Below, in pieces: positions 26,188-64,000 of a stretch of 64,000 nt of DNA. The first letter of the stretch is position 1. Each line of letters begins with the position of its first letter. The position numbers and the translations under genes were made by a program. Source of the stretch: Trichosphaerium sp. ATCC 40318. Taxonomy: Eukaryota > Protista > Tubulinea. The notes under the pieces were generated by a model, which did not search any database, was not told the origin of the DNA, and saw nothing but the letters and a program-made list of their open reading frames with translations. The stretch covers positions 682,001 through 746,000 of the forward strand of contig JALMLS010000093.1 in the NCBI GenBank assembly GCA_038496445.1, written 5' to 3'.

Positions 26188-29100
26188 TTACGATTCAGTC
26201 TCTTCGCTACTACTTTGTGTTGTCTCTTCGGATTCCTTTTCACTACTACTGCTACTACTACTAATTTCATCATCATCAGGAGCTACAAAAGTAGCAGGAG
26301 AAGCTGCAAAACTCGGAGCTTCAGCAAAGCTAGGAGTAGGAGCAAAACTCACATCTGTAAAACTTGGAGATTCACTGTAGCTATCAGCTGCAAAAGAATC
26401 AGGAGAAACCCTCCTTGGTTTCTTCTTTTTTTTCTTCTTGTTCTTTGTTATAAAGTTTGTATCTAACTCATCTGTAGTTGCTGAAACAACACCCTTAGAA
26501 GACCCTGAAGGGCTCTCTATTATAGGTAAAGCAGATGAGCTATTATTGTTGTTTATACCAACTTGTTCGCTCTCGCTAACACAAGTTTCTTCCATGCTGC
26601 TGACATTGTAGTTTCTTCCTGATAGGATACGTCCTTGTGATGCATGTAGTTTTGATAATTTTGTTATATAAGTTGATTTCTTCTCAGGTGCAACCTTTGA
26701 TATTGTAGCTATTATCTTACCCATTGTAGGTCTATAATAATGTTAGAAGAAAAAAGTGAGAAAAAAAAGTAAAAGTAAAAAAAAAGTTACGGGAGAATAG
26801 AAAAACTTGTTCCTTCTCTCCTTCTCTCTGCAGTATTTTTTTTTCCTTTAAATTCTGCTAACTGTACTGGTTTGTTTTATTATATTTTTCGAAAATTTTA
26901 GGTTCACCAACATGCACGTGTTTGAACAAAAGGCTGAATGGTTTTTTTTTTCTATTTTATAATTTGTGTACCTCTGAGATGGACGCTTCCAGCATATCTC
27001 CATAATATGTTTTAAAGTCTTGTCAGTGTCTTTTGGTATTTTTGGTTTCAATCCCTTATTTCTAATATCAATCAATTAACGGAGGTGTACATAGAGTGCA
27101 CCAAATAACGTACAGAATCTTGTAACCAAGAACTACAGAATTTTCATTACTATGAGGCTCCTCGCCAGCTACTAGTTCCCAAACGAGAATACCAAAACTC
27201 CATGTATCGCTTGCTTCAGTATATTCGCCATCAAGAGCCTCAGGTGCCATCCATTTAACAGGACCTGTCTGTACAGTACCATCGAATAATTCAAGCACGC
27301 TCTGAAGAAAAAGAGAGTTAGATACACGTGTCATATTGTCAAGAGCTACTTACATAGTCTGTGATCTTAGGAATACCCTCAGAATTCAACTAGATGAAGC
27401 GTGTTAAAGGGACAAGCAAGCAAAAAAAAAAGAGCAAAATAAGACAAGGTGGGGTTGTACCATAATGTTACGACATGAGACGTTCTTGTGTAGAATACCG
27501 TGATCATGAAGATGCTTTAGGCCTGTTGCGATACCTCGTGCCATGACAAGAGCATCCTCGTCTGTAAGACGAGTTTGTGGATTATAAGCAATAGCAGCCA
27601 AACACCCGCCATTCAAGTACTCCATGACAATGCTAACCCTGCTTCTCGCACGTTCGACACAAAAAGCGTACATCTACAATTTGTCATTAGGAAAACGATC
27701 AAAAGGAACAAAGTATTATTACAACGCCGAAAAATGGATGAGTTGTTGAAGAAACATCGAAAACGCACCTGCATGACGTTGTCGTGTTGAGGAATACTAG
27801 CTAGGTTCTTTACTACATCTAACACGTATTCTGGGTCGCCAAGGTTCGTGCATTGCTTGATAGCGACGGTATTGCCTCTCCATATGCCTACGAGAAGGTA
27901 AACAAAACGCACGGTAAAAGATAAAAAAAAAAGAAAAAAGATTTTTAGCGAAGAATGGTTTCGATCCATTGACCTTTGGGTTATGGGCCCAACACGCTCC
28001 CTGCTGCGCCACTTCGCTTTTTTCGATGGAAGTCAAAGACGATAATGGGTAGTCTTTCAAAATTAATAAAAGGACCGCTGTTGACTTTGTACTGGCTTAC
28101 AAAAACCCTTTTGTACCTTTGTAAACAACACCAAGAGTTCCTTGGCCAAGCTTTGATCCAACTAATCTGAAATCTCTGGCGCCTATTAGCCAGTCTTTAT
28201 CTGCTTTGTAGTTAGCACAACGAATAGAAGGTTTATTGGGACCTGGCAACGAGAATCTGCGTTGTGGTGAGCCACCTTCTTTCATGTTGAATGTTAGTGG
28301 TTCTCTGAAGTACATTGGCCGATTGTTTGAACCCTAGAATAATATTTGTTAGCTCTAAAACAAATCGAAAAATAAACAGCGTACAGATTTACCACTCTGG
28401 CTTGTACGTATTTTAATCAAATATAGAACAACCACTGTAGTAAGAAGCAAGCAAATACTTATAACAGCTGCAGCACTAATGATCAAAGCTGTTGTAACTG
28501 TACTCTCTGCATTGAGGTCAGAAATATAACCGTATTATATCTTTTTTTAAGCGTACTTCCATCGCCTTCTGTTACTGAACAAGCTGATGCCTCATCTTGC
28601 AATACAGCAACAATATTTGACATGTTGGTGTACCCAACATTGGGTACAATCAAGCGTGCAGTTATTGTAAACGACCTACAAGTAATTAAACATCGCTTGG
28701 GTTTTTTATGCCAGTAGTAAGACTTACTTGCATCCGCCATCATCATCCTCAGACCTCTTGTTTACAACAAAAGGTGGGCCATCAATAAAGAATTCAAAGG
28801 CGGTATTTGCTCCTTTTGCTGTGTACTCATTTGCATGAATATATTCTTCGTTAGCCTAGAATAACTATTGAGTAAACTGTAACAAGGAAAGCAAAAAAAT
28901 TTTCTTTGGTACCCTGACTGTATCTAACTCTACTGTCAAGTTTCCGAAATATGCTAGATCTGCATTGCTGACAGTGAAGAGATTACACAATATGACAACT
29001 TGTGATTGCAAGAGGTAAACAGTCTTTGCTGTAGTCAAGTCCTCCCGTGGAAAGCTGTCACATTTTGCAATGAATCCCTCAAGAGGTGGTAAAGCAGGCT

Positions 29101-59291: not shown

Positions 59292-59852
59292 TGGTAGTTG
59301 TTGTAGATTGTTTGGTGTTGTTATATTATGACTTATTCAGGCGTAAAATTTTCCCTGGAACAGCCCTGGAAAATTACTGCAGCGTTATTACCCCACTATG
59401 TATTTTTGGAGATTTATTTTTGTATATGTACGATACAATTGCTGTAGCGGTTGACATTCGAAAAAAACGAAAATACAATGATGCTAGAGTTTTTTTCTAA
59501 ACGAAAAACTGCATCAAATCTACATTCCTTTTCTCGGACAATCTGACTGACTCCTTGAACAAAGTATACCCGCTTGAATACTGAAACTAGCTCGGACTTT
59601 TTCACCTTTACAATTGCGCAATTTGCGTAAGTTTTTACGCACGCTGAAATTTTCCACTCTTGTAACCGCCGCTGAGGCGAGGTCAGGCTTCTACGGAGCA
59701 TTTACGAGCGACGAGAGGTCTTATAAAGTGTGAATGTAAAAATATTGCGAACGCGCTATAAAAGAAGCGTTGACACTCGCCACTACGTTATTTTAGAAGC
59801 TTTGGTGCCAAGAAAGCCTTTCTCCGTAAAGGCAGGTACATAATCTGATATT

Positions 59853-61442
59853 CTACAAAACCTTGCCACTTTCTTCTTTTTCGTTCATCTCCGCTTCAGA
59901 CTCCTTCTTTTCCTGTTCTAGCCGTTCTTTCTCGGCCTTTTGTTCTTGAAGAATTTTTAATTTCTCAGCGAAGATTTTATCAAATTCTTCTTTCTCGCTA
60001 TTTTGTTGTTTATCACTATCAGTAGCCCACTTTGCCGTCCTATCTGATTGATACAACATTAGAATGCCTTCAGGGAGAGTCATAGTATCTTGGACATTAT
60101 CGGCAGCAGTAGCGTATATTTCCATGCCTAGAGGTTGCATACAGTGAGTAATACCGATCAACAAGAGGTAAATGAGCCAAAAAAACTTTTTCTGCCCATT
60201 ACGTTTAAAAATAGCATAATCAGAAAATGGAAACGTTTAGCGCAAAAATACATTCCAAAAGCATCACTGTACCCAAATTATAATGTCGTAGCACCATGCC
60301 ATCACCCTAATAATGTATTTAATGATATTGGAATAGATAGATAATAATATTATCTGTACCTTCTCGCTATTAACTTTAGAGCATCTAAACGGTTTACTGG
60401 TTACCATGAACGTCCGACAGGCAGCAGGGCGGTATTTATAAACCTAGTAGAGCTAAGAAAATTGTTTTGAAAAAAGAAGTCTGGTACGCACTGTACAAGC
60501 TCCTTCATCACTAAGGAATACACACTTGGTCGTTTCGTACGACTTTTTCCAAAATTTATCAACATCGTCAGCACCATAATTAGCTTGTAAATGCAATAGC
60601 TGTAATTGCTCTTTGCTACGCATTATCATTAGTACAAGCATCTGACGCGTATAAAAATATGCTACCAGGCGAACAGCACGAGAATCAAATTAAAATACAA
60701 CAAAAAAGCTACGTAACGCACGTTGGTCCTCCGGCTTTTTTCATACGCCTGTACAATAATTTAGCTTCATCAGAAGTTATAAAAACCATCTGATGGCAGC
60801 AATGAGCACAACCTAATAAAAGGTCGGTAAACAAGAAATGTCATGTCACGTTAGAAAAAAAAATGGCGCCGCGAAGGCAGAATCGAACTGCTATCACTCC
60901 CGTGATCTACAGGTTTGAAGCCTGCACCGGGGACCACCCCTGGCTCGTCTCGGCGATGAACAAACGCGGTTCTCGTGCTTTTGTGCTTGACTTTATGAAA
61001 ACAAAAAAAGTTGTGGTTTATTGTAAGTGTCAAGTGTATTGGTACCTTTTTTACACGAGAGTTTAGGAGTGCCAACTGCTTTTTGATGAAGTGTAAACGC
61101 TTTCAGTTGTCTGTGGACTTCTCTTGCCCTTTTTGCGCCTGGTTTCATCTTAGCGAGCTCTTGTGTAATTAAAAGCATGTTATCTGCTACATCTTTTTGT
61201 TGTTTTTTCGGTGCTTGCGCCATCAATGCCATTAACCCTTCTGTTACTTTCATATCCTCCATTGTAGGCTCATTTACCGGCTTTTCAGCTTCTTTCTTCA
61301 GTTTGGCATCTCGCTCTGCGCGTTTGTGTTTTTGCGAGTTTGGGTAGTTTGGCAGAAGCACGTAGGCGCGTTTTGGACTGTACACTGCCTTTTTGACCAG
61401 TTGAGCGGTATGAGAAAACCGCGTTACGCGTAGTAAGCTCAT
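59853..61442 (-). CDS. YkgJ/UPF0153-type CxxxCxxCC cysteine-cluster protein with probable mitochondrial presequence; 3' end uncertain
   Basis: Spliced SCKK|GCAHCC..ITSDEA, CVFLSDEGACT|VYKYRPAACR; N-terminus MSLLRVTRFSHTAQL. Confidence 0.82.
60855..60863 (-). terminator. Pol III oligo-T terminator of tRNA-Sec
   Basis: T9 directly follows the encoded CCA. Confidence 0.75.
60864..60954 (-). tRNA. Selenocysteine tRNA (UCA), intronic, with encoded CCA
   Basis: GCCGAGACG-A-GCCAGGGGTGGTCCCCGG-TGCAGG CTTCAAA CCTGTA-long variable arm-GCAG TTCGATT CTGC-CTTCGCGGC-G-CCA; 9/4 acceptor/T fold, G73, anticodon arm matching the eukaryotic tRNA-Sec consensus. Confidence 0.95.
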
Positions 61443-61597
61443 TGCAGTGGGCAAGTGACTCTTGTACCAGAGTGGACCAATTCAGACCTGTGGAATTATG
61501 GCGAAACAAAGGTAGCTAATTTTTCACATCGCAGTAGCATTAACGTTGTGCTTTGACACGCTTACCTTGTTCATAAGTGGACTCCTTTGCGTTGATA

Positions 61598-64000
61598 ATG
61601 GTATTCGTACATTTCACACTTTGTCTAATTCGACACGCCTCTTATTTTGATTTAGTACAACAACAACAACAATGCGTACCCTCCGCCGAATAACCAACCA
61701 AAATACAACAACTATGGCTACAACAATCAACAACAACCGAATACACGCATGCAAAGGTCGCATACACAACCGTTGAGCGGTTTTTCAGGGTTAGCTCAAA
61801 ATCTCTCAAATGGCCTCAATAGTTTCGCATCGAGTTTAAATAACTCGGCAAGCTTCGGTGGCGCGCAGCGGCAGCATTCAGTTGTACCGGCGTATAACCA
61901 ACCACAACAGCAACCGAATTATGCGCCTGGGGTACGCTTACGCTAGTTAGCGTTTCACTATTCAACCGATAAACTAATTACATGTAGCAACAACCCCAAC
62001 CCCAATCATATGGAAGCTATCAGCAACCCAACTATGGTGGAAATCAGGCAGTCGTACCACAGGTAGGCAACAAAATATAGCTTTCCGTAAAACGTTAATT
62101 TGTCCACAAAAGCCGAAACTTTACAAATTCGCGTTCTCATAAGAGCATATTTCTAATGCGTAATGAATATCTCATGATTTTTTTGTAGCCAAACTTCGGT
62201 GCAAAACCTCTGCCGCCTCAACAGACGCCGCAGTATGGTAATCCTAGCCCAGTGCCAAATTATGGATCCAGCAACGGACAACTGCAAAGACAACCTAGCT
62301 ATGGTTCTAATAACGGACAGCCACCACAAAACTATAATTATCAACCTCCTATTGCTGGTGGCCCAAAACAACCTCTGTATAGATCAAACAGTGGTGGACC
62401 ACCTAACCAACCATACCCACAACCAGGGCCACCAAAACAACAATACTCACAACAGCCTGTTGTACCGCACCCACAACCTCTGTATAGGTCAGGCAGTGGC
62501 GGACCACCTAATCAACCTTACCCACAACCAGGACCTCACAAACAACCATACCAACAACAACCCGGCGCTGGTCAACAGCAATACATGCCAAAACAACCGC
62601 ACCCACAGTCTTTGTATAGGTCAAATAGTGGTGGTCCACCCAAACAACCTTATCCACAGCCAGGATCGCATAAACAAGCATACCCACAGCCAGTGTACAG
62701 AGCAAATAGTGGCGGTCCACCTAACCAACCTTACCCACAACCTGGACCTCACAAGCAACCGTACCCACAACCTGGGGCACCAAAACAAATGTACAGAGCT
62801 TTAAGTGGAGTTCAACCTTACAGGCAACCGGGGCCTCCAAAAAATAATGCGTATGCCAACCAGCCTCAAGGTCAACCATATGGACGTCCACAGCAAGTGT
62901 ACGGGCAACCAAAGCAAGCAATGTTTAGACATGGATCTGGAGGTCAACCTCAACCAGTAATGGCGCCTAAAGGTAACTACCAGCCTGCTCCTAGAGGTAA
63001 TTCTGAAAGCGTTTTTTAATCCCTAAACTCACTCACTCAACAGATTCAGTACTTCGCAGTAGCTCTATGGGGTACCCAAAAGGACCAACACTAGCTAAAC
63101 GACCTCCATTGCGTACCAGTCAATCTGCATTGCAGCTTCCAAAAGGTGGATATGGAAAAATGTCTCCAGCTGCGCTTAACCTAGCACAAGGAGTATGTTG
63201 CATATTATTATTTTCTGCGCAATGTGAAAATTTGCTAATTTTTATGTAAGGGCTACCAACAAAATAGACTACCAAAGCTTGGTGTAATGTACTCGTAATC
63301 AGTTTAACTTAGCATATTAATATTCGTTTAGCCCCAAGCGTGCCTCACCAAGGAATACACCTCCATCATCTGGCCGCAAATCTAGCAATGCGTCATCACC
63401 TGCAAACGTTCGTTAACATTTCTATTTGGTACAGTTTTGTTTACCATACTGACTTGGCTTACCTAGTCATATCGATCATCTGGAAATGGTGTTGTTGTAA
63501 ACAAATCCAATAGCGGCTTACACAACTTCCCTTCATCAACTTTCAAGCCACCATTTGCTCAAAGACTAATTCTACGAAAGAATCGTATAACGAGCATTCC
63601 TTCAAAAATAAACCTCCTTGAGAGAACACTTGAAGAGCTTGACTTAGCTAATAATCTTATTAAAGAGCTTCATCCCAATATAGGTACGTTATACGTGAGA
63701 AAAGAACCATAAAAAAAAAACCTGCACGTGACTTTAAACTTACCTCTTTTTCTTTTCAGGTGTATTATCTAATCTACGTATTCTGTGTCTTGGAAATAAC
63801 AGGTTAAAGGAGCTTCCTTTTGCTATATTCCTTCTCACAAACCTTATCAAAATTGACGCACAACGTAATGAAATTTTGAACATTCCAAAGGATATTGCAA
63901 AGTTGGAACAATTGAGACACCTGAATATGTCTAACAATAAGCTCTTTAAACTCCCTGATTGCGTATGCGATCTAAAGGATATGGAGGAGTTGTTCCTCAG
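61598..64000 (+). CDS. Large protein with Pro/Gln/Tyr/Gly-rich N-terminus followed by LRRs (runs off the window)
   Basis: ATG-only first coding exon spliced to YNNNNNAYPPP; LRRs LEELDLANNLIKELHPNI, LRILCLGNNRLKELP, LRHLNMSNNKLFKLP. Confidence 0.8.
62373..62795 (+). repeat. Coding quasi-tandem repeat, 4 copies of (L/V)YRxxSGGPPNQPYPQPGPxKQ
   Basis: Visible in the 62252..63019 translation and as recurring ggtggaccacctaaccaacc-like DNA units. Confidence 0.85.

Follow-up and report, generated by a model that had tools for sequence, protein, structure and literature searches.

The selenocysteine tRNA gene and its host intron

The first intron of a six-exon protein-coding gene of Trichosphaerium sp. 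ATCC 40318 carries a gene for selenocysteine tRNA (tRNA-Sec) with a genome-encoded CCA end. Both genes lie on the minus strand of the 64,000-nucleotide (nt) stretch that was analysed (contig JALMLS010000093.1, forward-strand positions 682,001 to 746,000; hereafter the window). The features of the intron are listed below in the direction of transcription; positions are those of the window, signed positions count from the start of the tRNA, and entries for which no other basis is named were read from the sequence.

60813..61045, minus strand: intron 1 of the host gene, 233 nt, GT..AG, phase 1 within a Gly codon (joint 60810|61044 in contigs of public runs X3 and X4)
61003..61009, minus strand: T7 run, at -55..-49
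60991..60997, minus strand: CATAAAG, the sole TATA-like word upstream of the tRNA, at -43..-37, about 13 nt further upstream than the usual -30 position
60868..60954, minus strand: tRNA-Sec(UCA) body, 87 nt (full Rfam model RF01852, fold and comparison with 40 other bodies)
60916..60918, minus strand: anticodon UCA, which reads UGA (sequence and Rfam alignment)
60879..60889, minus strand: T arm AGTTCGATTCT, agreeing with the B-box consensus GGTTCGANTCC at 9/11 positions
60864..60867, minus strand: discriminator base G73 (60867) and genome-encoded CCA (60866-60864)
60855..60863, minus strand: T9 run immediately after the CCA, a probable RNA polymerase III (Pol III) terminator
60850..60854, minus strand: CTAAC, a possible branch site, with its A about 38 nt from the 3' splice site

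The Rfam model for tRNA-Sec (RF01852) matches positions 60954..60868 on the minus strand from end to end (model positions 1 to 91 of 91), with 61.7 bits against a gathering score of 47 and an E value of 4e-10, and a permissive Rfam scan returned the same match at 60868-60954. ARAGORN, with the settings used, missed this gene and reported only an initiator methionine tRNA (iMet) gene in the window. The anticodon arm has a 6-bp stem and the 7-nt loop CUUCAAA. The acceptor stem of 9 bp (GCCGAGACG / CUUCGCGGC) contains the mismatches A5.G and C8.U and is followed by a 2-nt linker, and the T stem of 4 bp (GCAG/CUGC) completes the eukaryotic 9/4 form, as opposed to 8/5 in bacteria. The D stem has six pairs, one bulged A and a 4-nt loop (UGGU), giving a D arm of 20 nt, and the long variable arm consists of a 5-bp stem and a GGGA loop. 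Free folding recovered the cloverleaf with an unremarkable energy z-score, as is usual for a single tRNA. A preliminary description of the locus, made from the letters alone, had reported a full eukaryote-type tRNA-Sec, the order G-CCA-T9-CTAAC, an A5.G mismatch and a bulged A in the D stem; the Rfam match over the whole model confirms the first, and every other element is present, on the minus strand, together with the mismatch C8.U that the description did not mention.

The window contains no second copy of tRNA-Sec within its 64 kb, no other known RNA family or selenocysteine insertion sequence (SECIS) element at E<=0.05 and, by the Rfam scan, no gene for U6 or another small nuclear RNA. 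A scan for bacterial-type promoters and terminators in the window gave nothing relevant.

Contigs from four public runs (X1 to X4) were placed on positions 59800-61700. Only contigs were used, and none of the runs is on record as RNA; they were taken as cDNA because spliced contigs can come only from cDNA. Intron 1 is really spliced: one contig each of X3 and X4 joins 60810|61044 and leaves out 233 nt bounded by CT..AC on the plus strand. The tRNA has the same sense as its host (both minus) and begins 91 nt past the 5' splice site, and the T9 run ends 41 nt short of the 3' splice site. Besides CTAAC, a second candidate branch site, TTTAC within the 9-mer TTGTTTACC, was noticed about 20 nt from the 3' splice site. 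The intron falls between ...SCKK and (G)CAHCC of the host protein and so divides a C-x3-C-x2-CC cluster. The preliminary description was thus right about same-sense nesting in a real intron with flanking exons that are joined in RNA, and about the splitting of a Cys motif. A meaning for the position of the intron inside this motif was considered and dropped; the intron around the iMet gene is likewise of phase 1 and in a Gly codon, there in the P-loop region of a protein kinase.

The G+C content of the window is about 0.37 and its introns are short; values of 37.69% GC and a mean intron of 75 bp were reported for the Trichosphaerium sp. draft genome in a description that mentions neither tRNAs nor selenoproteins (PMC10521059). 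In so compact and intron-dense a genome, the landing of a tRNA gene in an intron is expected by chance, and only a bias of sense would be non-random. The tRNA-Sec gene of Caenorhabditis elegans also lies in an intron of a gene transcribed by RNA polymerase II (Pol II) (Aeby et al. 2010, PMC2943599), and 44% of the tRNA genes of that species are intronic yet transcribed by Pol III, with 56% of the intronic genes sharing the sense of the host (Sagi et al. 2016, PMC4999229). The two tRNA-Sec genes are alike in their place in a spliceosomal intron of a protein gene and in keeping Pol III features, and they differ in that C. elegans is a nematode and the present organism an amoeba-like protist of another supergroup, with an encoded CCA and no TATA box at -30. 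A literature search for nested tRNA genes in amoebae found nothing. The nested layout is real but has precedents, and it is a solid annotation without a new mechanism. It probably pins down the tRNA-Sec gene of this marine amoeba, and it gives the intronic tRNA-Sec of C. elegans a counterpart in a protist.

Recurrence of an encoded CCA followed by a T run

Comparison material was obtained by scanning metagenome contigs for a pattern of anticodon loop plus T loop, with the human T loop excluded by design. The resulting 87 loci and the window together gave 60 unique gene copies and 41 unique tRNA bodies, a sample that is small, pattern-selected and rich in marine lineages. None of the sampled metagenome bodies is close to the window gene. 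Its 22-nt anticodon arm is the same as in nearly all 40 metagenome bodies, and G73 is found in 40/41 bodies. Acceptor position 8 is mismatched (U.U or C.U) in every one of the 41 bodies, 12 of which have another mismatch at positions 4-6, and A5.G is therefore ordinary. Judged from this comparison, the window gene is a diverged but complete member of the tRNA-Sec family.

CCA stands directly after G73 in 12 of the 60 unique copies, the window included, against a chance expectation of 1/64 for CCA after a given base. These copies fall into five lineages: a coral-associated multi-copy family, a picoplankton-type pair (L001/L052), the single loci L023 and L042, and the window. With lineages defined by clustering at 90-95%, CCA occurs in 5 of 22-26 (binomial P 2e-5 to 5e-5), and among those lineages that have a T run within 14 nt it occurs in 5/13 (P about 1e-6). 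In all 12 CCA copies, a run of at least four T starts 3-9 nt downstream of G73 and hence 0-6 nt downstream of the CCA. Non-Sec tRNA genes on the same contigs, collected with ARAGORN, served as a control, and none of the 80 unique genes encodes CCA (Fisher P 2e-5). The encoded CCA of the window locus is thus probably not there by chance.

The metagenome loci with CCA (L001, L003, L004, L012, L023, L042, L051, L052, L061, L065 and L069) share with the window gene G73-CCA and a T run 0-6 nt further on, and L023 has G-CCA-T6 without a spacer, like the window gene. They differ from it in having a TATA box that starts at -32..-28 (in all but L052), in bodies that are not close, and in the lack of a host-gene relative nearby; tblastn of the six host exons against all 87 metagenome tRNA-Sec loci gave only chance-level matches (E 0.66 and above), so that the nesting was not seen at these loci, none of which is a close relative. 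The combination of CCA and T run is a recurrent design of tRNA-Sec in several unrelated eukaryotic lineages and not a peculiarity of this locus. An origin of the CCA from a retroposed mature tRNA was rejected, as the CCA is followed by T9 and not by an A tail, and CCA with a T run is found in unrelated lineages as well.

The preliminary description had stated that eukaryotic tRNA genes rarely encode CCA. The statement holds in general, both for the 80 non-Sec genes and in the Secmarker survey, where CCA was encoded in 3% of eukaryotic tRNA-Sec genes (PMC5330540), but it is weakened for tRNA-Sec genes with T-run terminators, in which 5 of 13 lineages encode CCA. The earlier figure of 3% for eukaryotes as a whole obscured the recurrent design.

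An encoded CCA bears on maturation. For eukaryotic RNase Z, CCA acts as an anti-determinant, and the acceptor/T helix of tRNA-Sec has 13 bp instead of 12 bp; because of these two properties, it is plausible that a ...GCCA-UUU transcript would mature by trimming of its U tail alone, with no part for RNase Z. In vertebrates, the trailer of tRNA-Sec is removed and CCA is then added (PMC8744743). If maturation by trimming holds, tRNA-Sec would often mature by a route that bypasses both RNase Z and CCA addition.

The metagenome loci included other arrangements. A large group, with bodies starting GTGTGCATGA... (L002, L009, L020, L026, L037, L038, L049, L053, L059, L062, L075, L081 and similar), has no T run within 20 nt downstream and mostly no TATA box at -30, and genes of this type may have another terminator or another mode of expression. 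On a 2.4-kb contig (L076:87-2399), genes for U5, U1, U4, U3, U6, signal recognition particle (SRP) RNA and tRNA-Sec form a tight cluster on one strand. On a contig of 2.7 kb (L027:67-2592), about 25 tRNA genes lie almost end to end with one gene each for 5S rRNA and tRNA-Sec.

Transcription of the nested gene

A T9 run right after the CCA and a T loop that matches a B box give the gene the look of a self-contained Pol III unit. For the window, the chance that nine or more T in a row begin no further than 8 nt from a given point is about 0.003, and here the run starts at the first possible base. The consensus GGTTCGANTCC is the established Pol III B box; the match to it would be weak evidence on its own because tRNA structure constrains the T loop anyway. 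The locus is most probably, with a rough probability of 0.68, a working and autonomous Pol III gene for tRNA-Sec that lies within a normally spliced intron and has the sense of its host.

In such a gene, TFIIIC would recognise the internal B box, and Pol III would initiate within the last ~48 nt upstream of the tRNA, since there is no TATA box at -30 and the T7 run at -55..-49 would stop Pol III coming from further upstream. Transcription would end in the T9 run, and the ...GCCA-U(n) transcript would be completed by trimming of the U tail and not by an RNase Z cut and CCA addition. The tRNA would then be serylated, converted to Sec-tRNA and used to read UGA in selenoprotein mRNAs. Pol II reads through the tRNA gene while transcribing the host, and the intron as a whole is normally taken out by the spliceosome.

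Several observations weigh against autonomous transcription of an intact gene. As the preliminary description had remarked, a clear TATA box is missing: none is present at -33..-27, where the best word, CACAAAA at -31, agrees in 5/7 positions, and about 30/58 other tRNA-Sec copies have a TATA word of at least 6/7 starting at -33..-27. Vertebrate tRNA-Sec genes are driven by an upstream promoter and not by internal boxes (PMC8744743, PMC2943599). The bulged A is unique to the window gene, whose D arm alone has 20 nt, compared with 19 nt in 38/40 of the others, and its score of 61.7 bits is below those of the 20 metagenome genes compared with it (69-80). The bulge may go with reduced function or with a second, better copy elsewhere in the genome. 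RNA of run X1 reads through the T9 run into exon 2, so that Pol II transcripts containing the tRNA exist. Furthermore, the evidence on the tRNA consists of contigs of four runs, none of which spans the whole tRNA.

The vertebrate tRNA-Sec gene (Trsp), which has a type-3-like Pol III promoter, belongs to the same RNA family and has in common with the window gene the 9/4 fold, the anticodon arm and a T-run terminator. It differs in its upstream TATA box, proximal sequence element (PSE) and activator element, in a start at +1 and in the addition of CCA (PMC8744743, PMC2943599), whereas the window gene has no TATA box at -30, encodes CCA and is intronic. The PSE and the distal activator element vary from lineage to lineage. 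In Trypanosoma brucei, tRNA-Sec is made by Pol II within a polycistron, between coding regions, and its genes have no A and B boxes (PMC2943599). The window gene resembles the trypanosome gene in lying in the same sense within a Pol II unit and in the lack of a recognisable Pol III promoter upstream; it differs by a B-box match, a T9 terminator and a cis-spliced intron around it.

The RNA of run X1 requires separate consideration. Its contig of 1,158 nt has introns 2-5 removed and intron 1 unspliced; it starts at tRNA nucleotide 51 (60904) and runs via CCA-T9 and the remaining part of intron 1 into exon 2, whereas exon 1 and the 5' part of intron 1 have no X1 contig. The pattern hints at a transcript that was begun or cut at the tRNA. 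It could be caused by a cut of the pre-mRNA at the tRNA, an internal start, selective retention of intron 1 combined with 3' bias, or a break in the assembly. An RNA of this type looks like a by-product, because it has neither the start codon nor the first Cys of the motif.

A cut of the pre-mRNA would agree with an origin of tRNA-Sec from the Pol II pre-mRNA of the host or from the excised intron, released by RNase P and 3' trimming in the manner of intronic snoRNAs, in which case the supply of the tRNA would be tied to the host and its excision would compete with splicing. This origin, which the preliminary description had proposed as release from a Pol II intron, is rather unlikely. The shared sense of tRNA-Sec and host and the lack of a TATA box at -30 upstream of the tRNA speak for it, the X1 contig resembles a polyadenylated 3' fragment as would be left by cleavage at the tRNA or close to it, and the iMet gene of the window shares the sense of its host, too, in an intron of nearly equal layout. 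The T. brucei gene is a precedent, and its authors raised the same idea for intronic tRNAs (PMC2943599). However, the T9 run after the CCA and the T6 and T10 runs after the iMet gene are needed by Pol III and not by Pol II, and the T loop matches a B box, unlike the trypanosome genes without A and B boxes (PMC2943599). The end of the X1 contig may be an assembly break or an effect of 3' bias, as contigs cannot show RNA ends, and same-sense nesting in the window amounts to 2/2 tRNA genes, which proves nothing. Given a T9 run right after the CCA, at a chance of about 0.003, and the B-box match, release from a Pol II intron is not favoured. Excised tRNA-like RNAs are known: mascRNA is a tRNA-like RNA cut from the MALAT1 transcript. 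The intron-encoded tRNA-like RNA of Arabidopsis GUT15 (PMC6152437) is another; like the window gene, such elements have a tRNA shape in a Pol II transcript from which RNase P-type processing could release them, and a release of this kind at the window locus could explain the X1 contig. The GUT15 and mascRNA elements have no autonomous transcription and are not decoding tRNAs, whereas the window gene is a complete tRNA-Sec with its own terminator. A broader version, in which tRNA and 5S genes would be systematically nested in introns in the sense of their hosts and coupled to them, RNase P-type excision would compete with splicing and leave a polyadenylated 3' fragment like that of X1, and an encoded CCA would spare RNase Z, is improbable; if true, it would make a second independent case of a Pol II-linked tRNA-Sec after the trypanosomes, within a genome-wide rule.

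It is quite improbable that the window gene is a decaying or minor paralogue and that the working tRNA-Sec gene lies elsewhere in the genome. Its Rfam score, the lowest of 21 (61.7 versus 69-80 bits), the unique 1-nt bulge in the D stem, the A5.G mismatch and the missing upstream TATA box would fit decay, the D arm being an identity element for PSTK (PMC2330242). Yet the hallmarks of the family are all intact, namely UCA and G73, the 9/4 helices, a D loop of 4 nt and the long variable arm; nearly all 40 other bodies have the same anticodon arm, and a second acceptor mismatch is shared by 12/41 bodies. The terminator is preserved, the window holds no other tRNA-Sec copy, and tRNA-Sec is single-copy in most genomes (PMC8744743, PMC5330540). 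A role of the nested gene mainly in the expression of its host is very far from probable. TFIIIC and TFIIIB, Pol III traffic or the folded tRNA would then slow the removal of intron 1 or create an internal start and so tune the metal-binding protein, which would suit the X1 RNA, unspliced at intron 1 alone with four downstream introns removed and nothing on exon 1; in addition, host promoters and intronic tRNA genes affect each other in C. elegans (PMC4999229). Against this, the pattern comes from one contig of one run, X3 and X4 are spliced normally, the truncated transcript has neither the start codon nor the first Cys of the motif, and no reason was found that would link the host to selenium. 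The suggestion in the preliminary description that transcription of the tRNA modulates splicing therefore retains one hint, the X1 RNA unspliced only at intron 1, to be set against the normal splicing in X3 and X4. As a testable lead, Pol III genes nested in the same sense may interact with the splicing of host introns in this genome.

The host gene and other features of the window

As read from the sequence, the host gene has six exons on the minus strand, with ATG at 61442 and the stop codon TAG at 59855-59853, and all of its exon joints are borne out by contigs of the public runs. Exon 1 is also covered by contigs at 61044-61136, 61163-61350 and 61228-61475. The remaining parts of the gene, with intron 1 as listed above, are the following.

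61046..61442, minus strand: coding part of exon 1, 397 nt, with a basic N-terminus, ending in ...SCKK and the first base of the Gly codon (open reading frame [ORF] reading)
60722..60812, minus strand: exon 2, 91 nt, (G)CAHCCHQMVF... (joints 60810|61044 and 60615|60722)
60616-60721, minus strand: intron 2, 106 nt
60492..60615, minus strand: exon 3, 124 nt (joints in the X1 contig)
60444-60491, minus strand: intron 3, 48 nt
60360..60443, minus strand: exon 4, 84 nt, containing VYKYRPAACRTF (joints in the X1 contig)
60307-60359, minus strand: intron 4, 53 nt
60273..60306, minus strand: exon 5, 34 nt (joints in the X1 contig)
60128-60272, minus strand: intron 5, 145 nt
59853..60127, minus strand: coding part of exon 6, 275 nt, to TAG (joint in the X1 contig and ORF reading)

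The family of the host protein was tested exon by exon, with exons of 28-41 amino acids as searched. Searched singly against Pfam, exons 1-4 matched no family at E<=10, and exon 6 gave only a weak, chance-level match to Cwf15; Escherichia coli YkgJ itself scores 44.6 bits on PF03692 (CxxCxxCC). In single comparisons with YkgJ, VYKYRPAACRTF of exon 4 aligns with IYKNRSSTCREF at YkgJ residues 73-84 (BLASTP E 8e-4), CAHCC of exon 2 takes the collinear place of CGACC in an alignment that is not significant, and exon 3 gave no alignment. The Cys cluster across the joint of exons 1 and 2 (C-KKG-C-AH-CC) has CxxxCxxCC spacing, one residue longer than in YkgJ, and the host protein has the motif order of an N-terminal Cys cluster ending in CC followed by a C-terminal [IV]Y..R...CR.F. 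A YkgJ-type host is therefore plausible at the level of motifs but not established: the label given in the preliminary description fits exon 4 and the Cys cluster, and single exons gave no Pfam match.

The second tRNA gene of the window is nested in a similar way.

27946-28018, minus strand: iMet tRNA gene, no encoded CCA, with T6 and T10 runs just downstream
27888-28116, minus strand: intron around the iMet gene, 229 nt, interrupting a Gly codon of a protein-kinase gene in phase 1 (GVVYKG|)

The iMet gene has the same sense as its host and lies 98 nt from the 5' splice site, compared with 91 nt for tRNA-Sec, so that the two introns (233 nt around tRNA-Sec and 229 nt around iMet), which both interrupt a Gly codon in phase 1, are nearly alike. 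The 9-mer TTGTTTACC occurs in both, about 20 nt before the 3' splice site (60826-60834 and 27897-27905, minus strand), and has three copies in the window compared with 0.8 expected; the 8-mer AAAGTCAA is found upstream of both tRNAs at differing distances. These words could represent the branch-site region, a Pol III-related element or chance. A mobile element shared by the two introns was also considered, but alignment yielded only TTGTTTACC and AAAGTCAA, too little to call one.

The host gene (minus strand) and a neighbouring gene on the plus strand are divergently arranged, and X2 contigs place their transcript ends (61475 / 61508) no more than about 33 bp from each other. The neighbour has a 55-nt GT..AG intron at 61600-61654, followed by an ORF rich in Pro/Gln repeats at 62252-63019.

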